Made by a program: the position numbers and the translations under genes
Shown here: one piece after another, positions 347-24,948 of the stretch
Layout of the letters: each line of letters begins with the position of its first letter
Numbering within the stretch: position 1 is the first letter of the stretch
DNA from: Lepidodermella squamata
Taxonomy: Eukaryota; Animalia; Gastrotricha
DNA: 24,948 bases
Direction: 5' to 3'
Assembly (NCBI GenBank): GCA_047495785.1
Contig: JBLDXI010000106.1
Span: forward strand, 1 to 24,948
The notes under the pieces: generated by a model
What the model was told of the DNA's origin: nothing
Seen by the model: only the letters and a program-made list of their open reading frames with translations
Databases searched by the model: none

Positions 347-379
347 CTTTGAAAAACTTCCAAAAGACCGAAAAAACTT

Positions 380-468: not shown

Positions 469-555
469 TGTCTTAAAATCGTGTGCATCTATCTTGTTGA
501 AGTATGCTTTAACTGGGGCCTATATCAATTGATTCTAAGACGGGTCCCATGTGTC

Positions 556-637
556 TCCTGTGTGGTTTAGTGGTTCAAGCTATAGCTCAGGAATCCAGAG
601 GTTGATAGTTCGACTCCAGCTCACAACATTTTTTTTT
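556..637 (+). promoter_or_regulatory. tRNA-derived Pol III type-2 promoter (A box + B box) followed by oligo-T
   Basis: A box TGGTTTAGTGG at 563-573 and B box GTTCGACTCC at 608-617, starts 45 nt apart as in tRNA (positions 8 to 53). T run at 629-637. No convincing cloverleaf. Confidence 0.65.
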
Positions 638-3913: not shown

Positions 3914-4519
3914 GCTTGTGTGGCATGCACGGGAGAGCAGCAGCAGCCTGCAGATTAGTCAGCAGATTTATAGTCGAAGTGTGAGCAGTATGAAACAGTG
4001 TGAGCGTTGTACCGCATAAGCCTTATATATTGTTATATAAGACATTTTATTGTATCGATAATATGTATTTGAGAGGGAAGTGAGTCGGGGTCAGATTGGC
4101 GACGAACATGGAATGAATAAAGCGATAAAAAGAATGTGGAATAGATATAAAATTCACTCGTAAGTTTGTCATCTCAGCGGTTTGCTATGGGCAAGAATCA
4201 CTACGCTTCAAAGCTTTCACACCAGAAAATGGCTGGGGTAAAAGTATAGCTTTGAGGTTGAAACCAATCCGAAATTCTACATTTGAACTTTGAATAAATG
4301 TTTTAAATGTTTGGATAAATCGACCGCGAACAATCTTTTTACGATGGCTAACGCTGCTTCAGTAATCAAACCGTTTGACGAAATTACGCAATCGAAACTT
4401 TCAGCTTCAATTACTCCGCAGCAGGAAACGATTTTGGCATCTCCTTTTGTAGTTTGTTAGCGGTTATAAGAGCAGTCGACGCTATCTACGTGAAACCAAG
4501 TGTCAAATAACCCCGTGGA

Positions 4520-4662
4520 CAAGGCCGGAGGAAACTGTTGGCTGCTCAGTCGAAACCCACAGGGGAACCTCACCCCCAAGCGCTCAGCTGGGCCCCGATC
4601 AGAGAATTGCCTATTGCCTATAGGGGCCCATGGTCAAGTTCAGGTGTCATGATCCGGCACTG
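4520..4662. mobile_element. 143-bp hAT-like MITE with 8-bp target-site duplication
   Basis: Direct repeat cccgtgga at 4512-4519 and 4663-4670. TIRs caaggccgga / tccggcactg (8 of 10 match). Internal tgggcccc/ggggccca inverted motif. An 8-bp TSD with CA...TG ends is typical of hAT. Confidence 0.8.
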
Positions 4663-5343
4663 CCCGTGGAGTAAATATTTTACTTATGAAAATATTTATA
4701 TTTCATTAATCAGCCGAGTTGTGAATCGCAGCACACTTAGAAGCCTTTTGGAATGATTAATGCAAGTTGCCTTACAGTCGCCTTGGAGCGGCTCTAAGGC
4801 GCCTTAGGCCTCATCAAACACGTCCTCAAAATGTGAAGGAAGATCAATTCACCCCATTCTCACTTGACCGTGATCTGCATTTTAGGCGCGCTATTTTAGG
4901 CTAATTTAGGCTATTTTAGGGTGACGTTGAAGTTAATTTTCTCCTGAATTTCGGACTTGTACATTTTCATGCGCGCGCGCGAGGGAGGGCTGCAATTATT
5001 TGTTGCGCAATAAATGCGAGCGAGGCGTATTTACGCGTAAAACGAGCCAACCAATAGGAGCGCGCGCGCGGAGGAAACACCGGCGGGCCGGAAAATGTGC
5101 CAATTCATTATCCCATTCGCATTGGGCGGAACCGATGGCAGGAATATTAATAATAGAAATATTGTGAATCTGTTTCGATAATAAATGAAAAACACCGTTA
5201 AAATTAAATCCAGGTTTGAATGACCACGAAAGCGATTATGTGGATACCACATGCATCATTGGATAGGTCATTGCGAGAGGAGTAAAGTGCTATAAAATTT
5301 GGGACATAATCGGTCTTTATATTTAATTGTCGTAATAATAATA

Positions 5344-5445
5344 AAATGGCGCCCCTTTCATACGCAACGTGACGATGGCTTCCAACAAAGCTATGCAAAT
5401 TATTCGATCAAATATAACTATACTTGCTGCCACGTAGGTACTTAG
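5344..5445 (+). pseudogene. Possible decayed fragment of another Cys-repeat exon (mirror at 24749-24850, minus strand)
   Basis: Translates to KWRPFHTQRDDGFQQSYANYSIKYNYTCCHVG, resembling WHLQRD... and IRYNYTCCE of genes A/B, with a GT donor-like site after the CC+1 codon. No intact upstream frame found. Confidence 0.4.
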
Positions 5446-6674
5446 GCGCCACGCGCCACACGCCGGACTGAATTGAGACATTAGTATTTAGTATCTAGCA
5501 TTAGTATATATTATATTTAGATGGTATAAATTGTCAGACCAGAGGGCGCTGAGAGTTTATTCCTGTGCTTGTATCGCAAGTTTGGCAAACTTTCTAAGCG
5601 ACAAAAGCTTTCAAGTTCGCGTCGGCGATGAACTGAGCGAGCCCCAGGAAATCAAATGCGGCTTCACTCGGGAATTTCTTTGAGCTCGCTTCTCTACATC
5701 TTTCACTGTGCTGACATGCAACCTCAGAGAATCAACCCCAGCGACCAGCGATTGTCAGAAACTTGTGGATGCAGTACCTCCAAGGTTATAGTGGAGGAAA
5801 AAAAGAAGTCCTCTATCAACACTCAGAAGATTCGATTCGTGCTGAAATATGATTACTTTATCGATAACTGTAAGCGGCCGTTGAACAATATAACGCAGCC
5901 GATCGTGTCGAAATCGGCTTTTGAAATCGATTGCAAGGCGAATCAATTATCACCGATTGTTAAATCTTGTAACAGCGGGTAGCCCTCGCAATTCTATACT
6001 TACTGAAAGCGGCCGCTGAACGAGAACGCTGCCGCGGTTCAGATTCTATTTCGCTGATTGCCAAGTTCTCCCATGGAAACTGAATGGTTACTGCGCTATC
6101 GCTTACCGCTTATCGCTATCCCGCAGTTCATCCCGCACTTTTGCGGTGGGTTGCTGGATAGGGACAATGTGCTGCTGGCGTTTCGCATGACGTTTTTGTA
6201 CTGAGTGGAGCTTAACCATACTAAAAGCTCAAGATTTTTCTTATTTTAACTATTTTCAAGTCTAAACCTAAACCGATATCAAAATAACATTTCGAGCGTT
6301 TTGTACTAAGCCACAGCTGATTTAGTCTTTTCGTCCTCATGTTGCTATGATTATTATTGGGGGTGCATGATTCTTTTTCGATGCTTTTTCGACTGATTTT
6401 TCGGATCTTTGGATGGAGGATCCAACCTTCTCTTGCTGATTCGCTGAATGCAATGACTTTTTTCATGCAGTCAATATCTACGGGACAAGATAACATTTTT
6501 AATTTTTTCGGATCATATTAAATTAATCAGAAATAAACGATATTTCATATTGGCTTGCTGACTAATATCTAGAATAACATCATTAAGAGGCATAGCTGAT
6601 CAATCGCATTAGCGCAGCTCATTGTTAATCGCGATAAATTTCGCGATTCCACTCGCAAACTGTGAAACTGCTCC

Positions 6675-7080
6675 ACGAGAATAAAAGCCATTGGACAATA
6701 AATGAGGCCATGCCTTGCCGTAGCGCCGCTTTACACTCGTAAATTTCGTCCAATTCGCGCTGCGCTGCCAAAGGGCGACCTTTACAGTAATGCCGAAGTT
6801 GAGATGCGAATAATAATTGTTAAACATATTTGTTTAAAATAATAAAATGTATTTTTACACTAGGTATATATTTTACTAGGTATTGGTGCCAGCAAAAATT
6901 GCTGCCTCTCTGCCCCCGCAACCGCGCTCTTTCCGTCGGAAAGTGTGCTCAGTTGTCGTTGAGTTTAAGATAATACCGTCCATAAACATCCGCAAGAAGC
7001 TCAACCGGCAGCAGTGTCATTTAGTCATTCACCTATTTTTGCCTTGCAAATTCAACTGCCGATTGCAAACTTTCCGTAAG
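6675..7080 (+). promoter_or_regulatory. Conserved upstream/promoter region of gene B (mirror at 23114-23519)
   Basis: Homologous to 1490-1940. CATAAA at 6981 and TCATT at 7017. Confidence 0.6.
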
Positions 7081-8689
7081 ATGAGTTTCGGACTGGCTGT
7101 TATCGCGGCGATTTTCAGCATTGCCTTTTGCCGTAAGATACCGAGCCTTGAATCCAATATTAGCCCATGTTGCATTCTTCTCTTCAGAAACTACGGTTAG
7201 CCCTGCGAAGCCTGTCGATTGCTCCACTGGAGTGAGCACCACCGACGCGTTCTACACCGATGGCATGCTATACGATTTCAACAATCGTTATGTCAACTGC
7301 CCCAACGGCAGCTACCTGGCGTCGTGGAGGACCAAGTTCACTCCGTCTTCGTCTGGCTGGTCGGCTCAGTATGAATACAAGTGCTGCAAGGCCCCGATAG
7401 TCAAAACGTGCAGGCAGGTTGCCAATGACCTCACTGAAAGCAATAGCTTTGGTATCGTCTCACTGGAGAAGCAGGATATCAACTGCAACGCCAATGAAGT
7501 TCTTAAAGGCTTCTCCCTGTCCGCATGGTGGACTCAAATCAGATACAGCTACACTTGCTGCGAGGTTAGTAGCCAGGTCATGACGCCTGAACCTTTGTGC
7601 TCATCTACATGTTCCCTTTTTCGCGGGAATTTAAAGAGGACAGTAACAGTTAGCAGGCAACCGTTTGAAGCGGCCCCTCCGTTGTCTACTAGGACATCTC
7701 GCAATGGTAGCCTTCAGCCTGTTTATAAAATTTACCCAAGTCTATTGGGCACTAGCCACTCTCGTACCAACGTTCATATCACTGATCTGCACCCTCTCAT
7801 GTATTTTTCCTTTTTGGCCAGATTTTTGCCCCATATGATCTTAACAAAAGGGCGCTGACAACCACTTACGACACGGCAAGTAACAGAACGACGTCGTTTG
7901 GCCGTCACAATCTGACATGCGCGGATGGCGAGCTGCTGCAGAGGTGGCACTTGCAACGCGATGTAACTCAGGGCATGATACGCTTCGAATACACCTGCGT
8001 TGGTTTCATCCCTCGCCGTAAGTTGCGAAGCAGCGGTTAAAACGTCAATAACATTGCTTTACTGTAGCTCCCAAGTGGTATGAGCAGTGCTCCGGTGCCA
8101 TCCTGAAAGCCCAGTTGGTCAATGATCCCAACGGGAACGTGTACAGCTTCACATATCCTCCTGTCATGCTGGATTGTGGCGACAAAAATTACCTGACTTC
8201 ATTCGGACTGACCAGGCCTAATGGAACCTCCGCCCAGTACACGTACACGTGCTGTGCTGCTCCTTCTCTCGTTGCGTCGTGCATCTACGTGGAGAACGAT
8301 TATACTTTCGGGTACTACGGCAACACCGATTTCCTTGACAGACAAAATGTCAAATGCAATGCTAACCAGGTCCTGCAGAAAGTGTTACTGGGTATGGACC
8401 GCATGATTTCTGAAGGTAGAATTGGCTACTCCTACGCTTGCTGCTCGGTGCGAATTCCAAAGATCCAACCGCTGATACTTTACAAAGATTTTTTTAGGTC
8501 TGGGGTACGCTCATCACTACTAAACATGCGACCGATGATTTCGTCGATGATGCCCAGGGCAAAACATTCCCCCTCGTCGGCCAACGCCCGACCTGTCCCG
8601 ATGGTAAGTTGCTGCAACAGTTCCAACTGGTGCGCACTAGTCACATCACTCACCGATACGAGTACACCTGCGCTAAGGTCGATGGCTAG
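7081..8689 (+). CDS. Gene B: secreted Cys-rich six-repeat protein, 398 aa, 5 exons (7081-7132, 7188-7564, 7822-8017, 8068-8447, 8498-8689)
   Basis: GT-AG introns (55, 257, 50, 50 bp) at the same positions and phases as gene A. 1197 nt in frame. Signal-peptide-like MSFGLAVIAAIFSIAFC. Ends RYEYTCAKVDG*. Confidence 0.88.
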
Positions 8690-8822
8690 GATTGTGTCGC
8701 GTGAGCTGATTGTGGATTGCTGATTAGCTAACAGATTGACAGCAGAGGATGTTTGACAGTTTTACCACAATAACATCATATAATTATTATATTATAAGAT
8801 TAAAAACCGTATATAAACGACT

Positions 8823-9434
8823 ATGGACGATGAACTTACTGCCAGTTACTTGCGTCGCGTCTTCGGTAGTACGATGTTTGGCCGCCGTCGCCTGTTGTGC
8901 TGGGACAGTTTTCGCGCTCACATAAGTAAAAATACGAAAAAAGAACTTAGTCGCTATGGCCTAGACATCGCCGTGATACCGGGAGGGACTACTAAATATT
9001 TGCAAGCCCCGGATGTTGTATGGAATCGTGAATTCAAGAGGAAGTTGGTCGAGCTGTACGATGAGTACTTGGCCGACTCGAGTCAGCATTCTTTCACAAA
9101 AGGTGGGAATATGAGGGCCCCCAGTTACGAGGTGGTCTGCTCGTGGATCCTTGAAGCTTGGAGGTCAATTAAGTTGGAGCTAATCGAGGATTCCTTCAAG
9201 CAATGTGGTGTTACGGTCGCTCTAGATGGCTCGGAAGATGACCTGATATCCTGTCTCAAACCAGGAAAGCCATGTCGGGGTGCCTATGATTTACTGAAGT
9301 CGACGAAAGCTCTGCCAACAAGCCAAACTGTTGCGGATGATGAAGAGGAGGGCAAGAAAAACGACTGCGAGTCTCCTGAAGGTGATGATGACGAGGAGGA
9401 TGAAGTTTTACTTGCCGATGAACAAAATGATTAA
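8823..9434 (+). pseudogene. pogo-family DDE_1 transposase C-terminal fragment, 203 aa
   Basis: Motifs LLCWDSFRAH, IPGGTTKYLQAPDVVWNREFK, WILEAW, SFKQCG and an acidic tail. The N-terminal HTH domains and first catalytic Asp are missing. Confidence 0.88.
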
Positions 9435-9580
9435 TTTTGACAATTCACTATGTGTTGAAAAGAGGGTTCGAAAAAATAAAGGTCAGGCCTCAAATAAAGA
9501 GCGGTCTCAAATATAAGACGGGGTTCCGTGTTGGTTTGAAACAAATATAGGACAGGCCCAACATTTCAGGCAGTACGGTA
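8823..9580 (+). mobile_element. 5'-truncated pogo/Tigger-like (Tc1-mariner superfamily) DNA transposon
   Basis: DDE ORF, then subterminal aaata(t)aagac/gg-type repeats at 9474-9556 and a terminal ...cagtacgg|TA at 9580, the CCGTA-type end. No matching left TIR. Confidence 0.8.
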
Positions 9581-10398
9581 AATATTGCTTCCGAGGAATG
9601 AGAGTCAAAGTCAGATTATTAGGGATGAACAAGGAACGAATAAACTTAAGGAGTTTTGGAAAAATTTCTTTTCGAAGTTGTCTCTCGTGAGAGTCTCTAT
9701 TGCTTGGAGATCGCGAGTTCAATCTTCTATCCATACCCAATCCTGTGACAGGACTTCACGGACTCCCTGTAGTTTGCGAACGCATTTCGAACATATTTCG
9801 AAATTTGCGAAAAATGGTTATCAAATATAATGCCCTAATTTTCATTCCAGATCTCCAGCAATGAATGCTATTTCCCGACTTCAGGCTATGTTAACGAGAA
9901 AAACAGTGTGCACTGGCCGTCGATATTAGAGAGCCCAAAAACTGCTCTCCGAAGTGCCTCCGATGTGCCCAGTGACAATGGCATCCGTTTCATTAGCCAT
10001 CAAATAAATTAAAAACAATTGTGATTAGCATATTTAGAAAAAGAGAATAAAAAGAAACGCACCTAATATTTTTACGCGCTGAAATCTCCGCTGGAAAAAG
10101 AAAATTTCAAATCCTGCCTTGAATTTAGCTAATCCACTTCGGATCCTATCATAGAGCTAGTTTCAAGATAGAGGTCCTACTCCTAACTAAGCCTGAAACC
10201 ACCATGGGCACCAGATGTTGTGATGAATCAGCATCGAGTGGTTGTAAAAGTAAACAAATCAGGTGATTTTTATATTGCCGATATTTCCTTCATGAAATGA
10301 ACAAATGAAATGAACAAATGAAAATGTTTTATTTTACGTCCACCTTCGGCTAAAAGTGATGGTAATAATATATATATACAAGCCTTACCCGTGAGGGT

Positions 10399-12831
10399 TT
10401 AGGGGACGGCTGACGACGAGAGATCAGCTTCAGGAACAGTCGCGAACAATCTGCTTTTTCCCATGAATTCATAATTTTCTATACTGTTACATAGTAGCTG
10501 CCATTCTTCCCGGTCTCTAGCTGTTACTTCCGCCAATTCTAAATCCGCAATTTTGTGAATTTCGATGCGTCGCATCAATAAGGTTGATTTACGGGGTCGC
10601 CCTCGTTTTTTAGGTTCATTAGGATCCCTGATACGTTTTTCATGTATATAAAAAATTCCGATTTTTAGAAGGCTTCTTCGGAGGCAGTCAGACCATCGGG
10701 TTGGCGGCCTGCCGCGAGGCAAGTACCAACTCGGGTCGACTGCTTTCCAATAATACATAATACTCGTGAGACTTTCAGGGTCATATTCGTCCTGTCGAAT
10801 TATATGGCCAAAATATCTCAGACGAAATTTTTCAATCAATTTACTCAATTCCATTACGTCGCAGATCAGTCTAATACCAACATTAGGAATATAATCTGTC
10901 CTAAACAGACCCATAATTGTTCTAAGCCATCGCATAAAGGTGACATTTAACCTTTGCTCTTGCTGGGTGGTCAGGTTCCAGGTTTCACATGCATAGGTGA
11001 CGGTAGGAATAACAACGCATTTAAGGACTTTCAATTTCGTAGCTAAGCTCACGTGTTTTCTATTACACATAAGTTTATTGAGGGCACCAAAGCAGCCGCC
11101 AGCTTTCGCTATGCGTGCCTTGATCTCCTCGTCCATTTTCCCGTCAGAAGTGATGATGCTTCCTAAATATTTGAAAGACGTCACTTTTTCCAAAAGTTTG
11201 CCGTCTAATTCAAGTTGGTAGTTTCTATCCTCACCGATCACCATGTATTGTGTTTTACTAATGCTGATTTTCAAGCCTAGCTCCGTACATGCCTTATTGA
11301 AAACATCCAATAATAATTTAATTTCTTCATGACTCATACCTATTAAAGTTCCATCATCCGCGAAGGCAATCAGGTTCAAAAATTGTTCAGTATTAATAGG
11401 GAAGCCACCTGGGGTGTCCATCAATTTTCGGCAGATTTTATCGAACGTTGCGATGAAGAGTAGCGGAGACAAGGGACAGCCTTGCCGTAAGCCCCTCTTC
11501 ACCACAAAGAAGTCCGAGAGTTGATTATTTATTTTGACTGCTACTTTGTTACATTTATAAAAGCTTTTAACAGCCGCAATAAGGTTAGCATCGACACCTA
11601 GTTCCTCGAGCGCGGCCCAGACCTTCTCGCGGTCGATCAGATCGTAGGCCTTCTCCAGGTCAATGAAAACTAAATGCATTTCCTTACCGCCGCAGCAAAT
11701 AACTTTTTCAATAAGTCTTCGAAGCACAAAAATGCAATCCCTACAGCCTTTCCTTGGTTGAAAGCCAAATTGACGTTTGGAAATTTTAGCGCCAATTAAA
11801 CTTCGCAATTTGCGTTCCAGGATGATCGCGTATAATTTTCCAACAACACTCAGTAAACTGATTCCGCGATAATTTTTGCAATCTGATTTTTCGCCCTTAT
11901 TCTTATATAGTGGTGCTATGATCGCCGTCGACCACTCCTCAGGGATGGTCTTGGTCGACCAAGCCTGATTTAGAATTTGCGCGAGCCATTCAATACCGGC
12001 GTCATCCAAGGCTTTCAGCATCTCTGGGGTTACCTCATCGATGCCGGCGGCCTTGCCATTTTTCATATGATTTAAGGCTGATTTGATTTCTTGAGTACTA
12101 ATACCGTCCGAATCAGGCGGAGGGGGTTCGTCGCTGCCAATGTTTGCGTCGCATTCCGCAATGAAGTCGTCGATCTCACAGCCCTCGAGGAGCTCCGAAA
12201 AGTAATCCTTCATCGCATCAAGAATTTCATCTAAATCAGTGACTAGTTCACCGTCTTTATTCTTTATCGGTTGTAATAATTGAGCGCCGCCATTTTTCTG
12301 GTTCCGTAGTTTTTTAACTTTAGCCCAAAATTTTCGTAAATTTTCCCAGTCATTTCCTTCGTTCAAATCGTTCAAATCATGTAATTCTCTAATGTTGAAA
12401 TCTTTCTCCAGTTTTTCAAGCAATTTTTTCTTCCAGTCTCGAACTTTGTTATACACTTCCTTAGTTATCAGAGATTTCTGGTACTGCGCATAGCTGGCTT
12501 TAGCTGTTTTCACAGCCTCTGCTGCCTGTTTGCACCACCAGGGTGGTTTTGGGTTGAAAATTGTTCTTGCTCGCTCACCGCACGCGATTCTAGTGGCTGA
12601 AAGCAGCGTGTTTTTCATGTTTTTGTATTGAGCGCTCAGGCTAGTAGATGTCGATGCTTCATCACTGACTTTCGAGTTGCGAAGATCAGTGATTTTTTCA
12701 TTGAAAACTGTTTGATAATTACTGTCACGTAGACGGTTATTGTTCAGAATTTTTCCAGAGTTAATTACTTTGGGTCTATTGTAATACGGGAGTTTTAGCT
12801 TAGCAACGACTAACCGATGATCAGATCCCAA
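10399..12831 (-). CDS. LINE ORF2 reverse transcriptase part (mirror copy)
   Basis: Translation identical to 17363-19795. Confidence 0.92.
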   Translation of the reverse strand: MGSDHRLVVAKLKLPYYNRPKVINSGKILNNNRLRDSNYQTVFNEKITDLRNSKVSDEASTSTSLSAQYKNMKNTLLSATRIACGERARTIFNPKPPWWCKQAAEAVKTAKASYAQYQKSLITKEVYNKVRDWKKKLLEKLEKDFNIRELHDLNDLNEGNDWENLRKFWAKVKKLRNQKNGGAQLLQPIKNKDGELVTDLDEILDAMKDYFSELLEGCEIDDFIAECDANIGSDEPPPPDSDGISTQEIKSALNHMKNGKAAGIDEVTPEMLKALDDAGIEWLAQILNQAWSTKTIPEEWSTAIIAPLYKNKGEKSDCKNYRGISLLSVVGKLYAIILERKLRSLIGAKISKRQFGFQPRKGCRDCIFVLRRLIEKVICCGGKEMHLVFIDLEKAYDLIDREKVWAALEELGVDANLIAAVKSFYKCNKVAVKINNQLSDFFVVKRGLRQGCPLSPLLFIATFDKICRKLMDTPGGFPINTEQFLNLIAFADDGTLIGMSHEEIKLLLDVFNKACTELGLKISISKTQYMVIGEDRNYQLELDGKLLEKVTSFKYLGSIITSDGKMDEEIKARIAKAGGCFGALNKLMCNRKHVSLATKLKVLKCVVIPTVTYACETWNLTTQQEQRLNVTFMRWLRTIMGLFRTDYIPNVGIRLICDVMELSKLIEKFRLRYFGHIIRQDEYDPESLTSIMYYWKAVDPSWYLPRGRPPTRWSDCLRRSLLKIGIFYIHEKRIRDPNEPKKRGRPRKSTLLMRRIEIHKIADLELAEVTARDREEWQLLCNSIENYEFMGKSRLFATVPEADLSSSAVP

Positions 12832-12841
12832 AACAGGTTCT

Positions 12842-13672
12842 TCAACGATATGACGAGTGGAATAATTGCCTATCCTCAGTAGGAGTTAGTACGAAATCAA
12901 TTAGCGATCGATTTTTACCGTCACCTGACACCCAAGAGTATCCGCAATTAGGAAAAAATGAGTTTACAAAGCACAAATTATTACTAGCCGCAAATTCAAC
13001 CCAGCAGTTGCCTTTTGGGTTTCCTATTGGATTAGCGTGTTCGCCTACAACTTTTGAGTTTTTCTGGCTTTTAGCTTGACCATTCAGGTCGCCCAGAATT
13101 ATAATTTTACCTGACTTAGTCACCAATCTATTGTATTCCAGCTGTAAATCAGAAATAAATTTGTCCAGTAATTTCGTGTCATTCGCCGCGGGTGCATAGA
13201 CTACTATGACGCTGAAGGTCTCACGATAGATTTTTAGCCTGGCCGACATTAATCGGTCGCTAACAAAATTTATTGATGTGACTTTGATAAATTTACATTT
13301 TTTTACGTACAATCCTGTCCCAGAACGGGCCGTCGCACCGTCATCCAGGCCACAATAATAAAAAGTTCCAGAACCAAGGTTGATTGAACCTTTCCCTTTC
13401 ATACGATGCTCTTGCACGGCTACCACGTGAAAATTTGCAAATTCATCATCCATCTCCCAATTTTTGTCTTTTTCGGTTCTAATATTTAGTGTTGCCAACA
13501 AAATCAGTCTAAATAATTCATAAGCTTGGTGGCTACGAAGGTTCTTTTTGTTGCGACGTCTTTTAGCAGATCGTTCGCCTACCTGTTCATCTTCATCTGA
13601 TCTCTCGTCGTTTCCTATCTTGCATTGATCAGAAAGTGTCAACAAAGGTTCGAAACAGTTTTTAGTATCCAC
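12842..13672 (-). CDS. LINE ORF2 APE endonuclease part (mirror copy, frameshifted from the RT part)
   Basis: Identical to 16522-17352. Confidence 0.88.
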   Translation of the reverse strand: MDTKNCFEPLLTLSDQCKIGNDERSDEDEQVGERSAKRRRNKKNLRSHQAYELFRLILLATLNIRTEKDKNWEMDDEFANFHVVAVQEHRMKGKGSINLGSGTFYYCGLDDGATARSGTGLYVKKCKFIKVTSINFVSDRLMSARLKIYRETFSVIVVYAPAANDTKLLDKFISDLQLEYNRLVTKSGKIIILGDLNGQAKSQKNSKVVGEHANPIGNPKGNCWVEFAASNNLCFVNSFFPNCGYSWVSGDGKNRSLIDFVLTPTEDRQLFHSSYR

Positions 13673-14052
13673 CGGTGTGTTATTGACGGTATGAGCGGCA
13701 TAGTAGCTTGTGCTCTGATTTTATTTATTAATTGGCACGCCTTTGCTACCGCCAGAACTGTAGCACTGAAATAACGCATATACCTTCAACGTGGAATACT
13801 CTGAAATAACGTAGTTCGTTCATGTTTGAATGAGTTAACCGTGAATAAAGTTTTTACTGGCAGGTCGAAATGGACCACTGTTTAACATGAGAAGGAACTT
13901 GAAGCTCGGCGTTTTATTTGAACAACACCATTGTTTTGAACTATATAAAGAACGTGCAGTTGCCAAGAAGATAACTATAATAGCCAAATGCATCATCTGT
14001 CCAGATTTGTTTGGTTCGCATGCCTCAAATTTAAAACTTTCGTTGAATGATA

Positions 14053-14169
14053 GGATCCATAGAGCTAGTTTCAAGATCCTACTCCTGACTAGGGCTGTAA
14101 ACGCCATGGGCGCCAGATGTGATGAATCAGCATCGAGTGGTTGGAAAAGTAAGCAAATCAGGTGATTTT
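14053..14169. repeat. Diverged ~120-bp repeat, direct to 10141-10270 and inverted to 19924-20053
   Basis: Shared atagagctagtttcaagat...cctactcct...ccatggg..ccagatgt...gatgaatcagcatcgagtggttg.aaaagtaa.caaatcaggtgatttt, with several indels. Confidence 0.85.
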
Positions 14170-14276
14170 CGATCGCTCATTATTCTTGAACTTAGTCATA
14201 GTAAACAATTCCCGGCAGATCCAGGTAGCTCTTGAAACGATGAACACATTTATTATTTTTTTCGAAATTTCAACTA

Positions 14277-15220
14277 CCGCATTTCATCAAATAATAGCCA
14301 TGGCTACTATTTTTTCCGAAACTCCGAAAATGGTCCAAAAAAGAGGCAATTATTCGAGGGGGCTATTATTCGAGGGGTGCTATTATTTATCGGTAATTGG
14401 CAATTTCATCATCGCAAATCGTTTGCGCTGTTGAATTCTCTGTTTTTTACCCATACTGCTAATTAATCCTCGGCATCAACTAACAACGGCTTACGTCCAC
14501 CACCTTAATCCGCTTAGCAGTATAAGGCGACGCAATTAGGACAGCTTTTTCCTTCCTCCTCCCTCCTCCAGCGCGCCACCTGCTTCGGACAAGGCATGGC
14601 GTGGCTATTATTCGAGGGGGGCTATTATTTACTTTGGGTCTATTTCACCGCCCTAAAAATAAATGTTTTTGCATTGTGAAATTCCATTTTCATTTAAATT
14701 TGTAGCGTATCGGGGTCGAAAAACGAGAGCCAAAAGCATCATATTTACAGGATCTTTGATGTTCTCGGACGCACGGATTAGAACTTTCGTCCGAAAATTC
14801 ATTTTTTGCCCGTGTCGCCCACCACCCCCGACACGTTCCGAGAGGCTGCGAAAATCGTGTGGCGCCACGTGCATCGCTACTTAATCCCGTTGTCCGTCTC
14901 TTTTGGGCGCCACCCACCCGTAGGACGACCCGGATGCCGCCCAAAACACGGCCTAAAAATGCGTCAGAAGTGCATCGGAGCGCATCGACAGAGAAATTGG
15001 AGGGTGCCTAATACCGGGTGCGCGCGTTTGGCAAGAATTAAGATGCGAAAAAACAGCTTGGCAGAATTTAAAAAAGTGTGTCGATCGTATTTCATCATTT
15101 TTTATATAATTTTTAAGGCGGTGAAATACACCCTTTTAAATGCTCAAAATAGCCTAAAATTTCGGGCTATTATTCGAGGGGGCTTTTATTCGAGTGAGGC
15201 TATTAATCGATGAAATACGG
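14277..15220. mobile_element. Non-autonomous pogo/Tc2-like element (MITE) with TA TSD
   Basis: TA|ccgcatttcatcaaataatagcc ... ggctattaatcgatgaaatacgg|TA. Subterminal (ggctattattcgagggg)-type repeats at 14345-14388, 14603-14630 and 15165-15210. No credible coding sequence. Confidence 0.85.
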
Positions 15221-15638
15221 TATTTCGAAATGGGGGAAAATCGCAAAAAATGAAATTGATCAATTAATAAAATATGGAAACTGCCAATAAGAAGGTGAAA
15301 TTGAAGGGTATTTCTAACGGACCAGGTAATTCTGATCACGCTCTACAATTAGATGCTTGGAGCGAGCTTGGAAGATTTTTTTCAGATTTTCTAGAATTTT
15401 TTTATTTATTGAATGAATGGTTTTTCACTACATTTTGACTCTGATCCAGCTGCGGACTCAATCCAGCCACACCATGTGCACATGGCGCACGTGCTGTCAA
15501 CAAAGAACCTGGATAGAATCCAACAGGCTATCTCCATTTTTGTAATGTAAAAAACCAGGTGGAATAATTCATAAAATCATAGAAAATCAGGAAACAACTG
15601 ACTGGAAAAAGCGGTACCAGCTGTACTCTCGGCTAACT

Positions 15639-16532
15639 TTGGAGGTGGCCAAGCTCTACGAGAGCAAGGCGAAGCTCGAGGAGGAGCTGTCGATGCACAG
15701 TCGACGGCTTCATCAGCTTGAATTGGCGGATGCCAGCAAGTCGCTGGTGATTGGGGGCTTCGCAGAGAACGCTACCGATGAGGAGATCTTCGACGTCCTT
15801 GATGATTTGCTTGAAGACGTGGAATTCGATGTTTTCGAGCGTCTGGGCAAGACCACTTATCGAGTCACGTTCCATTCGCAATCCCATGCGAAGCGGGTCC
15901 TCGATGCTATCTCCTTGCGATGGGAAAAGCCTCATTTTGCGAAACCCTACTATTCGTTCCATCAGCGAGAAGTGCGAAACGAAGCGAAGAGTTACATCGA
16001 AAACCGCCCAGACAAAGCGGAACTGAAAATCCAAGGGAACAGAATTGTGAAAGATGGAAAAACCGAGGTTTTCTACAATTCACGAAAGAAAGCATGGATC
16101 AAGCCAGAGGCGGCGACCGTCGATCGGCCGTTCGTTAACAACCGTCGTGGCTCACAATACCCGGGTAGTCAAGAACATCGACAGGCTCCCGAGGATGTCC
16201 ACAACAATGGCGGAAATGAGGTCAATCGCGGAAACCAGGCCAATGGCGGAAATCAGGTCAATGGCGGAAACCAGGCCAACAGACAGCAGAATCAGCAACA
16301 ACAACATACCAACCAGATGGCACGTGCTGGCACGTGCTTCAATTGCAATGCTCCAGGTCATTACTGGCGCCAGTGCCCGGCACCAGTGCAACCACGTGCG
16401 CCGCCCGTACGCAACAATAACAACAAAAACAAGTTTTTCAACCCGCGCATGGCACGCGACAACCGACGAAACGAACACGCGCCGCCAACGCCGAACTACA
16501 ACGCACAACAACAACACACCGGTGGATACTAA
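15639..16532 (+). CDS. LINE ORF1 nucleic-acid-binding protein (probably 5'-incomplete)
   Basis: Coiled-coil-like N-terminus, RRM-like segment (SLVIGGF...FERLGK...YRVTF), N/Q/G-rich linker and zinc knuckle CFNCNAPGHYWRQC (CX2CX4HX4C). The frame is open from 15546 but the first ATG is at 15693. Confidence 0.8.
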   Translation: MEVAKLYESKAKLEEELSMHSRRLHQLELADASKSLVIGGFAENATDEEIFDVLDDLLEDVEFDVFERLGKTTYRVTFHSQSHAKRVLDAISLRWEKPHFAKPYYSFHQREVRNEAKSYIENRPDKAELKIQGNRIVKDGKTEVFYNSRKKAWIKPEAATVDRPFVNNRRGSQYPGSQEHRQAPEDVHNNGGNEVNRGNQANGGNQVNGGNQANRQQNQQQQHTNQMARAGTCFNCNAPGHYWRQCPAPVQPRAPPVRNNNNKNKFFNPRMARDNRRNEHAPPTPNYNAQQQHTGGY

Positions 16533-17352
16533 AAACTGTTTCGAACCTTTGTTGACACTTTCTGATCAATGCAAGATAGGAAACGACGAGAGATCAGATG
16601 AAGATGAACAGGTAGGCGAACGATCTGCTAAAAGACGTCGCAACAAAAAGAACCTTCGTAGCCACCAAGCTTATGAATTATTTAGACTGATTTTGTTGGC
16701 AACACTAAATATTAGAACCGAAAAAGACAAAAATTGGGAGATGGATGATGAATTTGCAAATTTTCACGTGGTAGCCGTGCAAGAGCATCGTATGAAAGGG
16801 AAAGGTTCAATCAACCTTGGTTCTGGAACTTTTTATTATTGTGGCCTGGATGACGGTGCGACGGCCCGTTCTGGGACAGGATTGTACGTAAAAAAATGTA
16901 AATTTATCAAAGTCACATCAATAAATTTTGTTAGCGACCGATTAATGTCGGCCAGGCTAAAAATCTATCGTGAGACCTTCAGCGTCATAGTAGTCTATGC
17001 ACCCGCGGCGAATGACACGAAATTACTGGACAAATTTATTTCTGATTTACAGCTGGAATACAATAGATTGGTGACTAAGTCAGGTAAAATTATAATTCTG
17101 GGCGACCTGAATGGTCAAGCTAAAAGCCAGAAAAACTCAAAAGTTGTAGGCGAACACGCTAATCCAATAGGAAACCCAAAAGGCAACTGCTGGGTTGAAT
17201 TTGCGGCTAGTAATAATTTGTGCTTTGTAAACTCATTTTTTCCTAATTGCGGATACTCTTGGGTGTCAGGTGACGGTAAAAATCGATCGCTAATTGATTT
17301 CGTACTAACTCCTACTGAGGATAGGCAATTATTCCACTCGTCATATCGTTGA
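16519..17352 (+). CDS. LINE ORF2 apurinic-like endonuclease (APE) part; start uncertain, frame open from 16027
   Basis: Motifs LATLNIRT, VVAVQEH, GTGLYV, SDRLM, VVYAP, IILGDLNG, SLIDFVL. The final SDH motif lies in the next frame. Confidence 0.88.
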   Translation, partial: PVDTKNCFEPLLTLSDQCKIGNDERSDEDEQVGERSAKRRRNKKNLRSHQAYELFRLILLATLNIRTEKDKNWEMDDEFANFHVVAVQEHRMKGKGSINLGSGTFYYCGLDDGATARSGTGLYVKKCKFIKVTSINFVSDRLMSARLKIYRETFSVIVVYAPAANDTKLLDKFISDLQLEYNRLVTKSGKIIILGDLNGQAKSQKNSKVVGEHANPIGNPKGNCWVEFAASNNLCFVNSFFPNCGYSWVSGDGKNRSLIDFVLTPTEDRQLFHSSYR

Positions 17353-17362
17353 AGAACCTGTT

Positions 17363-19795
17363 TTGGGATCTGATCATCGGTTAGTCGTTGCTAAGCTAAA
17401 ACTCCCGTATTACAATAGACCCAAAGTAATTAACTCTGGAAAAATTCTGAACAATAACCGTCTACGTGACAGTAATTATCAAACAGTTTTCAATGAAAAA
17501 ATCACTGATCTTCGCAACTCGAAAGTCAGTGATGAAGCATCGACATCTACTAGCCTGAGCGCTCAATACAAAAACATGAAAAACACGCTGCTTTCAGCCA
17601 CTAGAATCGCGTGCGGTGAGCGAGCAAGAACAATTTTCAACCCAAAACCACCCTGGTGGTGCAAACAGGCAGCAGAGGCTGTGAAAACAGCTAAAGCCAG
17701 CTATGCGCAGTACCAGAAATCTCTGATAACTAAGGAAGTGTATAACAAAGTTCGAGACTGGAAGAAAAAATTGCTTGAAAAACTGGAGAAAGATTTCAAC
17801 ATTAGAGAATTACATGATTTGAACGATTTGAACGAAGGAAATGACTGGGAAAATTTACGAAAATTTTGGGCTAAAGTTAAAAAACTACGGAACCAGAAAA
17901 ATGGCGGCGCTCAATTATTACAACCGATAAAGAATAAAGACGGTGAACTAGTCACTGATTTAGATGAAATTCTTGATGCGATGAAGGATTACTTTTCGGA
18001 GCTCCTCGAGGGCTGTGAGATCGACGACTTCATTGCGGAATGCGACGCAAACATTGGCAGCGACGAACCCCCTCCGCCTGATTCGGACGGTATTAGTACT
18101 CAAGAAATCAAATCAGCCTTAAATCATATGAAAAATGGCAAGGCCGCCGGCATCGATGAGGTAACCCCAGAGATGCTGAAAGCCTTGGATGACGCCGGTA
18201 TTGAATGGCTCGCGCAAATTCTAAATCAGGCTTGGTCGACCAAGACCATCCCTGAGGAGTGGTCGACGGCGATCATAGCACCACTATATAAGAATAAGGG
18301 CGAAAAATCAGATTGCAAAAATTATCGCGGAATCAGTTTACTGAGTGTTGTTGGAAAATTATACGCGATCATCCTGGAACGCAAATTGCGAAGTTTAATT
18401 GGCGCTAAAATTTCCAAACGTCAATTTGGCTTTCAACCAAGGAAAGGCTGTAGGGATTGCATTTTTGTGCTTCGAAGACTTATTGAAAAAGTTATTTGCT
18501 GCGGCGGTAAGGAAATGCATTTAGTTTTCATTGACCTGGAGAAGGCCTACGATCTGATCGACCGCGAGAAGGTCTGGGCCGCGCTCGAGGAACTAGGTGT
18601 CGATGCTAACCTTATTGCGGCTGTTAAAAGCTTTTATAAATGTAACAAAGTAGCAGTCAAAATAAATAATCAACTCTCGGACTTCTTTGTGGTGAAGAGG
18701 GGCTTACGGCAAGGCTGTCCCTTGTCTCCGCTACTCTTCATCGCAACGTTCGATAAAATCTGCCGAAAATTGATGGACACCCCAGGTGGCTTCCCTATTA
18801 ATACTGAACAATTTTTGAACCTGATTGCCTTCGCGGATGATGGAACTTTAATAGGTATGAGTCATGAAGAAATTAAATTATTATTGGATGTTTTCAATAA
18901 GGCATGTACGGAGCTAGGCTTGAAAATCAGCATTAGTAAAACACAATACATGGTGATCGGTGAGGATAGAAACTACCAACTTGAATTAGACGGCAAACTT
19001 TTGGAAAAAGTGACGTCTTTCAAATATTTAGGAAGCATCATCACTTCTGACGGGAAAATGGACGAGGAGATCAAGGCACGCATAGCGAAAGCTGGCGGCT
19101 GCTTTGGTGCCCTCAATAAACTTATGTGTAATAGAAAACACGTGAGCTTAGCTACGAAATTGAAAGTCCTTAAATGCGTTGTTATTCCTACCGTCACCTA
19201 TGCATGTGAAACCTGGAACCTGACCACCCAGCAAGAGCAAAGGTTAAATGTCACCTTTATGCGATGGCTTAGAACAATTATGGGTCTGTTTAGGACAGAT
19301 TATATTCCTAATGTTGGTATTAGACTGATCTGCGACGTAATGGAATTGAGTAAATTGATTGAAAAATTTCGTCTGAGATATTTTGGCCATATAATTCGAC
19401 AGGACGAATATGACCCTGAAAGTCTCACGAGTATTATGTATTATTGGAAAGCAGTCGACCCGAGTTGGTACTTGCCTCGCGGCAGGCCGCCAACCCGATG
19501 GTCTGACTGCCTCCGAAGAAGCCTTCTAAAAATCGGAATTTTTTATATACATGAAAAACGTATCAGGGATCCTAATGAACCTAAAAAACGAGGGCGACCC
19601 CGTAAATCAACCTTATTGATGCGACGCATCGAAATTCACAAAATTGCGGATTTAGAATTGGCGGAAGTAACAGCTAGAGACCGGGAAGAATGGCAGCTAC
19701 TATGTAACAGTATAGAAAATTATGAATTCATGGGAAAAAGCAGATTGTTCGCGACTGTTCCTGAAGCTGATCTCTCGTCGTCAGCCGTCCCCTAA
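17363..19795 (+). CDS. LINE ORF2 reverse transcriptase part
   Basis: GSDHRLV (APE end), KAAGID, NYRGISLLS, QFGF, FIDLEKAYD, GLRQGCPLSP, FADD, FKYLGS. It starts at TTG only because of the frameshift. Confidence 0.95.
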   Translation: MGSDHRLVVAKLKLPYYNRPKVINSGKILNNNRLRDSNYQTVFNEKITDLRNSKVSDEASTSTSLSAQYKNMKNTLLSATRIACGERARTIFNPKPPWWCKQAAEAVKTAKASYAQYQKSLITKEVYNKVRDWKKKLLEKLEKDFNIRELHDLNDLNEGNDWENLRKFWAKVKKLRNQKNGGAQLLQPIKNKDGELVTDLDEILDAMKDYFSELLEGCEIDDFIAECDANIGSDEPPPPDSDGISTQEIKSALNHMKNGKAAGIDEVTPEMLKALDDAGIEWLAQILNQAWSTKTIPEEWSTAIIAPLYKNKGEKSDCKNYRGISLLSVVGKLYAIILERKLRSLIGAKISKRQFGFQPRKGCRDCIFVLRRLIEKVICCGGKEMHLVFIDLEKAYDLIDREKVWAALEELGVDANLIAAVKSFYKCNKVAVKINNQLSDFFVVKRGLRQGCPLSPLLFIATFDKICRKLMDTPGGFPINTEQFLNLIAFADDGTLIGMSHEEIKLLLDVFNKACTELGLKISISKTQYMVIGEDRNYQLELDGKLLEKVTSFKYLGSIITSDGKMDEEIKARIAKAGGCFGALNKLMCNRKHVSLATKLKVLKCVVIPTVTYACETWNLTTQQEQRLNVTFMRWLRTIMGLFRTDYIPNVGIRLICDVMELSKLIEKFRLRYFGHIIRQDEYDPESLTSIMYYWKAVDPSWYLPRGRPPTRWSDCLRRSLLKIGIFYIHEKRIRDPNEPKKRGRPRKSTLLMRRIEIHKIADLELAEVTARDREEWQLLCNSIENYEFMGKSRLFATVPEADLSSSAVP

Positions 19796-19867
19796 ACCCT
19801 CACGGGTAAGGCTTGTATATATATATTATTACCATCACTTTTAGCCGAAGGTGGACGTAAAATAAAA

Positions 19868-19902
19868 CATTTTCATTTGTTCATTTCATTTGTTCATTTC
19901 AT
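19868..19902 (+). repeat. LINE 3' tandem tail (CATTT/CATTTGTT units); mirror at 10292-10326
   Basis: cattttcatttgttcatttcatttgttcatttcat directly after AATAAA. Confidence 0.75.
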
Positions 19903-20613
19903 GAAGGAAATATCGGCAATATAAAAATCACCTGATTTGTTTACTTTTACAACCACTCGATGCTGATTCATCACAACATCTGGTGCCCATGGTGGTTTCA
20001 GGCTTAGTTAGGAGTAGGACCTCTATCTTGAAACTAGCTCTATGATAGGATCCGAAGTGGATTAGCTAAATTCAAGGCAGGATTTGAAATTTTCTTTTTC
20101 CAGCGGAGATTTCAGCGCGTAAAAATATTAGGTGCGTTTCTTTTTATTCTCTTTTTCTAAATATGCTAATCACAATTGTTTTTAATTTATTTGATGGCTA
20201 ATGAAACGGATGCCATTGTCACTGGGCACATCGGAGGCACTTCGGAGAGCAGTTTTTGGGCTCTCTAATATCGACGGCCAGTGCACACTGTTTTTCTCGT
20301 TAACATAGCCTGAAGTCGGGAAATAGCATTCATTGCTGGAGATCTGGAATGAAAATTAGGGCATTATATTTGATAACCATTTTTCGCAAATTTCGAAATA
20401 TGTTCGAAATGCGTTCGCAAACTACAGGGAGTCCGTGAAGTCCTGTCACAGGATTGGGTATGGATAGAAGATTGAACTCGCGATCTCCAAGCAATAGAGG
20501 GTCGAAAACTTGACAACTTCGAAAAGAAATTTTTCCAAAACTCCTTAAGTTTATTCGTTCCTTGTTCATCCCTAATAATCTGACTTTGACTCTCATTCCT
20601 CGGAAGCAATATT

Positions 20614-21371
20614 TACCGTACTGCCTGAAATGTTGGGCCTGTCCTATATTTGTTTCAAACCAACACGGAACCCCGTCTTATATTTGAGACCGCTCTTTAT
20701 TTGAGGCCTGACCTTTATTTTTTCGAACCCTCTTTTCAACACATAGTGAATTGTCAAAATTAATCATTTTGTTCATCGGCAAGTAAAACTTCATCCTCCT
20801 CGTCATCATCACCTTCAGGAGACTCGCAGTCGTTTTTCTTGCCCTCCTCTTCATCATCCGCAACAGTTTGGCTTGTTGGCAGAGCTTTCGTCGACTTCAG
20901 TAAATCATAGGCACCCCGACATGGCTTTCCTGGTTTGAGACAGGATATCAGGTCATCTTCCGAGCCATCTAGAGCGACCGTAACACCACATTGCTTGAAG
21001 GAATCCTCGATTAGCTCCAACTTAATTGACCTCCAAGCTTCAAGGATCCACGAGCAGACCACCTCGTAACTGGGGGCCCTCATATTCCCACCTTTTGTGA
21101 AAGAATGCTGACTCGAGTCGGCCAAGTACTCATCGTACAGCTCGACCAACTTCCTCTTGAATTCACGATTCCATACAACATCCGGGGCTTGCAAATATTT
21201 AGTAGTCCCTCCCGGTATCACGGCGATGTCTAGGCCATAGCGACTAAGTTCTTTTTTCGTATTTTTACTTATGTGAGCGCGAAAACTGTCCCAGCACAAC
21301 AGGCGACGGCGGCCAAACATCGTACTACCGAAGACGCGACGCAAGTAACTGGCAGTAAGTTCATCGTCCAT
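20614..21371 (-). mobile_element. Mirror copy of the truncated pogo-like transposon
   Basis: Reverse complement of 8823-9580. Confidence 0.8.
20760..21371 (-). pseudogene. pogo-family DDE_1 transposase fragment (mirror copy)
   Basis: Translation identical to 8823-9434. Confidence 0.88.
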
Positions 21372-21504
21372 AGTCGTTTATATACGGTTTTTAATCTTAT
21401 AATATAATAATTATATGATGTTATTGTGGTAAAACTGTCAAACATCCTCTGCTGTCAATCTGTTAGCTAATCAGCAATCCACAATCAGCTCACGCGACAC
21501 AATC

Positions 21505-23113
21505 CTAGCCATCGACCTTAGCGCAGGTGTACTCGTATCGGTGAGTGATGTGACTAGTGCGCACCAGTTGGAACTGTTGCAGCAACTTACCATCGGGACA
21601 GGTCGGGCGTTGGCCGACGAGGGGGAATGTTTTGCCCTGGGCATCATCGACGAAATCATCGGTCGCATGTTTAGTAGTGATGAGCGTACCCCAGACCTAA
21701 AAAAATCTTTGTAAAGTATCAGCGGTTGGATCTTTGGAATTCGCACCGAGCAGCAAGCGTAGGAGTAGCCAATTCTACCTTCAGAAATCATGCGGTCCAT
21801 ACCCAGTAACACTTTCTGCAGGACCTGGTTAGCATTGCATTTGACATTTTGTCTGTCAAGGAAATCGGTGTTGCCGTAGTACCCGAAAGTATAATCGTTC
21901 TCCACGTAGATGCACGACGCAACGAGAGAAGGAGCAGCACAGCACGTGTACGTGTACTGGGCGGAGGTTCCATTAGGCCTGGTCAGTCCGAATGAAGTCA
22001 GGTAATTTTTGTCGCCACAATCCAGCATGACAGGAGGATATGTGAAGCTGTACACGTTCCCGTTGGGATCATTGACCAACTGGGCTTTCAGGATGGCACC
22101 GGAGCACTGCTCATACCACTTGGGAGCTACAGTAAAGCAATGTTATTGACGTTTTAACCGCTGCTTCGCAACTTACGGCGAGGGATGAAACCAACGCAGG
22201 TGTATTCGAAGCGTATCATGCCCTGAGTTACATCGCGTTGCAAGTGCCACCTCTGCAGCAGCTCGCCATCCGCGCATGTCAGATTGTGACGGCCAAACGA
22301 CGTCGTTCTGTTACTTGCCGTGTCGTAAGTGGTTGTCAGCGCCCTTTTGTTAAGATCATATGGGGCAAAAATCTGGCCAAAAAGGAAAAATACATGAGAG
22401 GGTGCAGATCAGTGATATGAACGTTGGTACGAGAGTGGCTAGTGCCCAATAGACTTGGGTAAATTTTATAAACAGGCTGAAGGCTACCATTGCGAGATGT
22501 CCTAGTAGACAACGGAGGGGCCGCTTCAAACGGTTGCCTGCTAACTGTTACTGTCCTCTTTAAATTCCCGCGAAAAAGGGAACATGTAGATGAGCACAAA
22601 GGTTCAGGCGTCATGACCTGGCTACTAACCTCGCAGCAAGTGTAGCTGTATCTGATTTGAGTCCACCATGCGGACAGGGAGAAGCCTTTAAGAACTTCAT
22701 TGGCGTTGCAGTTGATATCCTGCTTCTCCAGTGAGACGATACCAAAGCTATTGCTTTCAGTGAGGTCATTGGCAACCTGCCTGCACGTTTTGACTATCGG
22801 GGCCTTGCAGCACTTGTATTCATACTGAGCCGACCAGCCAGACGAAGACGGAGTGAACTTGGTCCTCCACGACGCCAGGTAGCTGCCGTTGGGGCAGTTG
22901 ACATAACGATTGTTGAAATCGTATAGCATGCCATCGGTGTAGAACGCGTCGGTGGTGCTCACTCCAGTGGAGCAATCGACAGGCTTCGCAGGGCTAACCG
23001 TAGTTTCTGAAGAGAAGAATGCAACATGGGCTAATATTGGATTCAAGGCTCGGTATCTTACGGCAAAAGGCAATGCTGAAAATCGCCGCGATAACAGCCA
23101 GTCCGAAACTCAT
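21505..23113 (-). CDS. Gene B': inverted copy of gene B (exons 23113-23062, 23006-22630, 22372-22177, 22126-21747, 21696-21505)
   Basis: Reverse complement of 7081-8689. Confidence 0.88.
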
Positions 23114-24948
23114 CTTACGGAAAGTTTGCAATCGGCAGTTGAATTTGCAAGGCAAAAATAGGTGAATGACTAAATGACACTGCTGCCGGTTGAGCTTCTT
23201 GCGGATGTTTATGGACGGTATTATCTTAAACTCAACGACAACTGAGCACACTTTCCGACGGAAAGAGCGCGGTTGCGGGGGCAGAGAGGCAGCAATTTTT
23301 GCTGGCACCAATACCTAGTAAAATATATACCTAGTGTAAAAATACATTTTATTATTTTAAACAAATATGTTTAACAATTATTATTCGCATCTCAACTTCG
23401 GCATTACTGTAAAGGTCGCCCTTTGGCAGCGCAGCGCGAATTGGACGAAATTTACGAGTGTAAAGCGGCGCTACGGCAAGGCATGGCCTCATTTATTGTC
23501 CAATGGCTTTTATTCTCGTGGAGCAGTTTCACAGTTTGCGAGTGGAATCGCGAAATTTATCGCGATTAACAATGAGCTGCGCTAATGCGATTGATCAGCT
23601 ATGCCTCTTAATGATGTTATTCTAGATATTAGTCAGCAAGCCAATATGAAATATCGTTTATTTCTGATTAATTTAATATGATCCGAAAAAATTAAAAATG
23701 TTATCTTGTCCCGTAGATATTGACTGCATGAAAAAAGTCATTGCATTCAGCGAATCAGCAAGAGAAGGTTGGATCCTCCATCCAAAGATCCGAAAAATCA
23801 GTCGAAAAAGCATCGAAAAAGAATCATGCACCCCCAATAATAATCATAGCAACATGAGGACGAAAAGACTAAATCAGCTGTGGCTTAGTACAAAACGCTC
23901 GAAATGTTATTTTGATATCGGTTTAGGTTTAGACTTGAAAATAGTTAAAATAAGAAAAATCTTGAGCTTTTAGTATGGTTAAGCTCCACTCAGTACAAAA
24001 ACGTCATGCGAAACGCCAGCAGCACATTGTCCCTATCCAGCAACCCACCGCAAAAGTGCGGGATGAACTGCGGGATAGCGATAAGCGGTAAGCGATAGCG
24101 CAGTAACCATTCAGTTTCCATGGGAGAACTTGGCAATCAGCGAAATAGAATCTGAACCGCGGCAGCGTTCTCGTTCAGCGGCCGCTTTCAGTAAGTATAG
24201 AATTGCGAGGGCTACCCGCTGTTACAAGATTTAACAATCGGTGATAATTGATTCGCCTTGCAATCGATTTCAAAAGCCGATTTCGACACGATCGGCTGCG
24301 TTATATTGTTCAACGGCCGCTTACAGTTATCGATAAAGTAATCATATTTCAGCACGAATCGAATCTTCTGAGTGTTGATAGAGGACTTCTTTTTTTCCTC
24401 CACTATAACCTTGGAGGTACTGCATCCACAAGTTTCTGACAATCGCTGGTCGCTGGGGTTGATTCTCTGAGGTTGCATGTCAGCACAGTGAAAGATGTAG
24501 AGAAGCGAGCTCAAAGAAATTCCCGAGTGAAGCCGCATTTGATTTCCTGGGGCTCGCTCAGTTCATCGCCGACGCGAACTTGAAAGCTTTTGTCGCTTAG
24601 AAAGTTTGCCAAACTTGCGATACAAGCACAGGAATAAACTCTCAGCGCCCTCTGGTCTGACAATTTATACCATCTAAATATAATATATACTAATGCTAGA
24701 TACTAAATACTAATGTCTCAATTCAGTCCGGCGTGTGGCGCGTGGCGCCTAAGTACCTACGTGGCAGCAAGTATAGTTATATTTGATCGAATAATTTGCA
24801 TAGCTTTGTTGGAAGCCATCGTCACGTTGCGTATGAAAGGGGCGCCATTTTATTATTATTACGACAATTAAATATAAAGACCGATTATGTCCCAAATTTT
24901 ATAGCACTTTACTCCTCTCGCAATGACCTATCCAATGATGCATGTGGT

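Follow-up and report, generated by a model that had tools for sequence, protein, structure and literature searches.

The window, that is, the whole 24,948-nt stretch of Lepidodermella squamata DNA that was analysed, is one entire contig of the assembly (C106). We found a Cys-rich repeat gene (gene B) on the plus strand at 6883-8723, composed of a signal-peptide-like exon and two repeat exons with a ...Y.Y.CC pattern, of which the Cys-rich ORFs are located at 7121-7858 and 8115-8723. Gene B showed no match in Pfam even at E = 10, and as a lead it may be considered dermatopontin-like (PF14704, Atlas score 0.93). A paralogue of this Cys-rich repeat gene was found at about 2.0-4.0 kb. A fragment of a pogo-type DDE_1 transposase is located at 8823-9434 on the plus strand, and the more complete copy of a LINE, also on the plus strand, extends over approximately 15590-19899. 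This LINE includes ORF1 with a zinc knuckle (15639-16532), an APE endonuclease ORF (16054-17352) and, in a different frame, a reverse transcriptase ORF (17363-19795). Mirror copies of all three are present on the minus strand: gene B at 21471-23311, the pogo fragment at 20760-21371 and the LINE at 10295-13681, where the junction cuts within the endonuclease region. The ORFs agree with the preliminary description, in which the arms duplicate gene B, the pogo fragment and most of the LINE, the last being continuous on the right and cut on the left.

The same description claimed a giant near-perfect palindrome, and this was borne out. Through a base-by-base check, position x was found to pair with position 30194-x, so that the left arm (5246-13681) matched the right arm (16513-24948) over 8436 nt with zero indels, around a spacer of 2831 nt (13682-16512, plus strand). 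A repeat search of the window returned arms of 5246-13685 and 16509-24948 with 2823 nt in between. The arms contained nine mismatches, all located in one 12-nt block (9683-9694 versus 20500-20511), and outside this block no single-base difference was found over 8.4 kb. Past the arm pairing, the first mismatch is at 13682/16512, which places the break at 13681/13682 exactly, as had been proposed. The left overhang (1-5245) is unpaired. Because the window is the whole contig and base 24948 is both its last base and the end of the right arm, the right arm is truncated by the contig end, and the palindrome has neither an outer boundary nor a second flank.

Through searches of the assembly, we found that C106 is an approximately 99% copy of one locus in a 643-kb contig (C18), which holds the same 19.6 kb linearly and colinear across both breakpoints. 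Window positions 1-13685 aligned with the minus strand of C18 from about 158.7 to 141.9 kb, including the left overhang (~158,688-153,453, 96-99% identity) and the left arm (153,452 to ~141,896, 98.7-99.1% identity). Positions 13671-24948 aligned with the plus strand from 139,058 to 153,452, where the right arm is halted by the contig end. A single alignment of 99.3% identity joined 13671-23814 to C18 139,058-149,188 and included the spacer end to end. The spacer is ordinary genomic sequence that contains multi-copy repeats together with the 5′ portion of the LINE (ORF1), and in C18 it is colinear with the right arm. A missed adapter or template-complement read-through was rejected, since all 2831 nt of the spacer align with C18.

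The two copies of the locus also differ. A 3.1-kb stretch of C18 (149,188-152,320) is missing from the left arm of C106, and a 589-bp multi-copy element in the left overhang (198-786) is absent from C18. Divergence between the contigs was about 0.5-1% overall (0.7-1.3% outside the outermost segment, which reached 3.9%); transitions exceeded transversions, indels were few, and transposable element (TE) indels were present. C106 probably represents the second haplotype at this locus. Since the arms are identical despite the real divergence between C106 and C18, both arms derive from one haplotype or one molecule. The sole other copy of the locus in the assembly, that of C18, is linear; no second representation of the palindrome was found, and nothing indicated two copies of the locus outside C106.

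In the 12-nt block, which is a block substitution and the sole difference between the arms, the right-arm version (20500-20511) matches C18. The left-arm version (9683-9694, plus strand) was not found elsewhere in the whole assembly with up to two mismatches allowed, and no nearby source of it, as expected for a short template-switch patch, was found in the window with up to three mismatches. Such a block is not expected if one molecule was simply copied, and an error of the polymerase or of the consensus could account for it.

The junction joins C18 sites 139,058 and 141,891, which are 2.83 kb apart (<10 kb). The 5-nt microhomology GTGTT (7/9 bases including flank) is located at 13677-13681 on the plus strand and is common to both joined sites, lying in C18 at about 141.9 kb (minus strand) and about 139.06 kb (plus strand). 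The linear C18 and this microhomology support the earlier proposal that one fold-back or template switch led from ~13682 to ~16513.

The structure is not confined to this locus. Reading the self-matches in searches of the same assembly, we found fold-backs with approximately 100% identical arms in seven of the eight tested contigs of ≤25 kb; besides C106 these are C101, C115, C120, C140, C145 and C151 (13-24 kb, arms 100% identical). The right arm terminates at the last contig base in C106, C115, C120, C140 and C151; in C101 and C145 the pairing is unbroken to the edge of the examined sequence and projects to base 1. In a larger contig, C103 (230 kb), a fold-back starts at base 1. An outer boundary was absent in every fold-back contig tested, C103 included. 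C101 is 100% identical to a linear locus within C17, and C145 likewise to one within C54; no linear counterpart of C115, C120 or C140 was found among the scored candidates. Junction microhomology was GATCTCGA (8 nt) in C101 and GGTGATA (7 nt) in C145, with chance probabilities per junction of about 8e-5 and 3e-4, respectively. The joined segments are separated by 0.99 kb in C101, 0.76 kb in C145, 1.9 kb in C103 and 6.7 kb in C115; for C120 and C151 the separation does not exceed 0.74 and 0.68 kb, respectively.

The mirror repeat is present in the sequence, yet almost certainly as an artefact of sequencing or assembly; C106 is very probably a technical chimera, produced by fold-back from one haplotype of the C18 locus. 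Of the two readings offered by the preliminary description, the technical inverted chimera is supported by the orphan contig, the linear C18, the junction microhomology and the recurrence in tiny contigs. The other, a young or conversion-maintained duplication raising the dosage of a secreted gene, found no support, there being no outer boundary, no second flank and no extra copies beyond C106. The fold-back geometry and the chimera reading are therefore retained from that interpretation, and the dosage-raising duplication is not.

The template switch would have taken place in the tube rather than in the animal, and we infer that strand-displacing amplification of the multiple displacement amplification (MDA) type is the best-fitting source. 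Inverted chimeras with an intervening deletion make up more than 85% of MDA chimeras, the joined segments mostly lie within 10 kb of each other, and priming uses 2-21 complementary nucleotides (PMC1855051). After amplification, palindromic reads account for 12-48% of long reads and harm assemblies (PMC6218980; Lee et al. 2023, PMC10450198). For C106, one DNA strand would be copied along a C18-type locus, and its 3′ end would detach and re-prime on the opposite strand, 2.8 kb off, through 5 nt of complementarity; extension back across the same sequence would then produce a molecule whose two complementary arms flank a genomic "spacer". One or a few such long molecules might be read and, being unmergeable with the linear assembly, would leave a read-length orphan contig. 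That only about 55% of the contig is colinear with C18 is the probable reason why haplotig purging left it in place.

Among the alternatives, a real and very young heterozygous fold-back inverted duplication on the non-C18 haplotype, by which gene B would be doubled along with the pogo fragment and the LINE, is very unlikely. C106 does carry SNPs and TE indels of its own, as a separate haplotype would, so the linear C18 does not directly contradict a heterozygous duplication, and the 12-nt arm difference could be a mutation that followed the duplication. Fold-back inverted duplications with kilobase spacers and microhomology also arise in vivo, and these two features fit such an event as well. 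However, the arm ends with the contig, the outer boundary and second flank being absent, and the 8.4-kb arms show zero single-base differences. The same structure is moreover found in seven of the eight tiny contigs tested, and two of these seven match linear loci of their own haplotype at 100% identity. Fold-back DNA of somatic or extrachromosomal origin, made in the animal at many loci by template switching at forks or by break repair and then sequenced, would leave a junction anatomy identical to that of the artefact, and many loci are indeed involved. But such molecules would be rare and normally below assembly coverage, the observed pattern is that of in vitro strand-displacement chimeras, and nothing in the sequence requires an origin in the animal; we consider this highly improbable.

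Taking all the fold-back contigs together, it is very unlikely that they represent real molecules of the animal produced by widespread microhomology-primed copying, whether somatic or in the heterozygous germline; if they did, the locus would carry an extra mirrored copy of a dermatopontin-like secreted gene. A mis-join by the assembler of two haplotypes head to head has a precedent in a small animal, the first Adineta vaga assembly (PMC8494291). Here the arms are identical, whereas between haplotypes there is 0.7-1.3% divergence in addition to TE indels, and the junction lies within continuous sequence with microhomology, away from read or contig ends, which leaves a mis-join hardly any probability.

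The main value of a technical fold-back chimera at this locus is in quality control of the assembly, in which fold-back chimeras account for the smallest contigs and for at least one end among the larger ones. Before palindromes, inverted duplications or gene dosage are read from such contigs, three checks are needed: whether the structure fills a small contig entirely or sits at the end of a contig, whether an arm halts at the contig end, and whether a linear counterpart exists elsewhere. The gene-dosage reading of C106 does not hold, and gene counts of the Cys-rich family should leave out the mirrored copy.

Compared with known systems, C106 resembles MDA inverted chimeras and palindromic long reads: its second segment is inverted, both segments map to a single locus, linear in its other copy, and the structure is read-length in scale and recurs at many unrelated loci. 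The gap between segments is 2.8 kb in C106 and 0.7-6.7 kb in the sister contigs, and complementarity at the junctions of C106, C101 and C145 is 5-8 nt. Unlike those systems, the chimeras here persist as finished contigs instead of raw reads, and the C106 arms differ in one 12-nt block. Human Y palindromes P1-P8 and the fold-backs of genomic disorders share with C106 the long near-identical arms, the kb-scale spacer and a multi-copy gene family; they have, however, defined outer boundaries, unique flanks, doubled depth and independent assemblies, whereas in C106 the contig end truncates the arm, and the locus is linear in its only other copy. The palindromes of the 2013 Adineta vaga draft were likewise giant and non-biological structures in the assembly of a small animal, later judged to be artefacts, with phased haplotypes having been wrongly scaffolded (Simion et al. 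2021, PMC8494291). In contrast to these, both arms of C106 come from the same haplotype, so that the cause would be a molecule or read that folded back rather than the joining of two haplotypes.

The inverted repeat of the window was recovered by a repeat search, with arms at 5246-13685 and 16509-24948. The base-by-base check confirmed that the mirror-image repeat of the preliminary description is present and exact: from 5246 to 13681, position x pairs with 30194-x with zero indels, and the pairing ends at 13682/16512, the breakpoint proposed there. Nine mismatches between the arms were found, all within one 12-nt block (9683-9694 versus 20500-20511). In this block the left arm reads TCTCGTGAGAGT, and both the right arm and C18, a 643-kb contig of the same assembly, read AAGTTTTCGACC. 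The left-arm block had no other occurrence in the 121-Mb assembly, and no nearby donor sequence was found. It is the sole feature of C106, the contig spanned by the window, that simple copying fails to predict, and an error of the polymerase or of the consensus in one arm may account for it. C106 (24,948 bp) is one of 151 contigs, and its right arm stops at 24948 because the contig sequence stops there, leaving the palindrome without an outer boundary or a flank on the right.

Through the search of the assembly, we found that C18 bears the C106 sequence colinearly. Window 787-13685 matched C18 158,495-141,891 on the minus strand in four pieces (96-99% identity), window 13671-23814 matched C18 139,058-149,188 on the plus strand in one piece (99.3%), and window 23822-24948 continued after that piece at C18 152,320-153,452. 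Since these alignments lie on opposite strands, C106 descends one strand of the locus, skips 2.83 kb ahead and returns up the other. The "spacer" is simply the sequence that separates both breakpoints in the locus. GTGTT is common to both C18 sites at the C106 junction, with seven of nine bases shared when the flank is counted.

The differences between C106 and C18 contained more transitions than transversions and few indels; C106 alone contained a 589-bp repeat, and C18 alone contained three stretches, of 3.1 kb, 0.48 kb and 0.13 kb. These differences are true divergence, and therefore C106 probably represents a different haplotype, or else a very recent paralogue, rather than a noisy copy of C18. 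Every difference is common to both arms, which indicates that the arms come from one haplotype.

The arms contain a two-exon Cys-rich repeat gene, a pogo DDE_1 fragment and a LINE with APE endonuclease and reverse transcriptase. As described before, the LINE is uninterrupted on the right and truncated on the left, because its zinc-knuckle ORF1 falls in the spacer. The copy at 16054-19795 is probably not intact, since the reading frame changes between its endonuclease and reverse-transcriptase ORFs, at about 17352-17363, and near-identical partial copies elsewhere (97-99%) suggest a young family. A tandem family of secreted-looking proteins with ...Y.Y.CC Cys-rich repeats occupies window 1600-4000 and 6880-8720 and C18 146.8-161.8 kb, with further members on C30, C29, C66, C54 and C4. 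This family gave zero Pfam matches even at E = 10, and its nearest ESM Atlas clusters bear dermatopontin (PF14704; score 0.93). C18 has one extra 3.1-kb Cys-rich unit (149,188-152,320) relative to C106, so the copy number of the family differs between haplotypes. The 589-bp element (198-786) is multi-copy: over 25 copies, 85-97% identical, are spread across many contigs. Its absence from the C18 allele makes the insertion polymorphic, and its copies each match their own reverse complement at about 70%, which points to a fold-back or MITE-like element. A short element with 54-nt inverted ends is present at 4878-5104 as a fragment that retains a single end; copies at 96-99% were found on C7, C11, C23, C43 and C46. 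Nothing observed resembled human, viral or toxin-related sequence.

Fold-backs were surveyed in the first 10 kb of 20 other contigs by self-alignment and search against the same assembly; the survey of small contigs leaves out C125. Seven of the eight tested contigs of 25 kb or less, C106 included, contained a fold-back, and C135 (15.8 kb), where none was found, was the sole exception. Among 12 larger contigs (first 10 kb each), no fold-back was found except in C103 (230 kb), where it begins at contig base 1 (1-2710 versus 4587-7297, spacer 1876 nt). The arm terminates on the contig's last base in five of the seven small fold-backs: C106, C115 (19.3 kb; 1792-7200 versus 13938-19346, spacer 6737 nt), C120 (15.9 kb; 4845-9999 versus 10736-15889, spacer at most 736 nt), C140 (24.3 kb; 6329-10000 versus 20666-24337) and C151 (17.5 kb; 3164-10000 versus 10681-17515, spacer at most 680 nt). 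In C101 (13.3 kb; 2521-6013 versus 7008-10500, zero mismatches, spacer 994 nt) and C145 (20.0 kb; 4647-6941 versus 7706-10000, spacer about 760 nt), the pairing is unbroken to the edge of the examined sequence and projects to base 1. The arms are about 100% identical in all six of these other small contigs and in C103:1-7297.

C101 and C145 are 100% identical to C17 433.0-436.0 kb and C54 4.1476-4.1507 Mb, respectively, both linear inside the larger contig. Thus the same haplotype exists as both a linear chromosome-scale path and a fold-back orphan, the outcome that would be expected of a minority chimeric molecule. Their junctions carry microhomology, GATCTCGA in C101 and GGTGATA in C145; a random junction would show microhomology of these lengths with a probability of about 8e-5 and 3e-4, respectively, and of 5 nt with a probability of about 3e-3. 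C101, C115, C120, C140, C145, C151 and C103:1-7297 mark a probable chimeric class, and every finding made on them should be flagged.

We consider it very likely that the C106 palindrome does not belong to the genome itself. If the C106 haplotype truly carried a heterozygous fold-back duplication, this would have to exist by coincidence alongside a class of seven contigs of the same appearance, and two of these directly contradict such a reading; we regard it as highly improbable. Somatic fold-back molecules formed in vivo would have the same appearance in sequence as in-vitro ones, but we give them hardly any credence. The 2.8-kb genomic spacer rules out both a missed adapter and template-complement read-through. 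Two haplotypes joined head to head are likewise ruled out, since the C106 arms are identical and of one haplotype; in this C106 differs from Adineta vaga AV13, whose palindromes were explained by haplotype mis-join (PMC8494291).

For the favoured technical fold-back, a single inversion junction, microhomology, identical arms, read-length orphan contigs and recurrence are established, and the C106 breakpoints lie on opposite strands of the linear locus, 2.8 kb apart. A 3' end would detach from its template, re-prime nearby on the opposite strand, at a site of short complementarity, and be extended into a fold-back molecule. The resulting contigs may have escaped haplotig purging because no more than about half of each is covered by its best colinear alignment. 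In sequencing of amplified DNA, palindromic reads make up 12-48% of the total with PacBio and 9-31% with nanopore, and such reads harm assemblies (PMC6218980; PMC10450198). The mechanism inferred here is the same model as that of Lasken and Stockwell for MDA (strand-displacing amplification). In their data, 85% of the chimeras were inversions in which the intervening sequence had been deleted; the joined segments mostly lay within 10 kb of each other, and 93.5% of these inversions showed 2-21 nt complementarity (PMC1855051).
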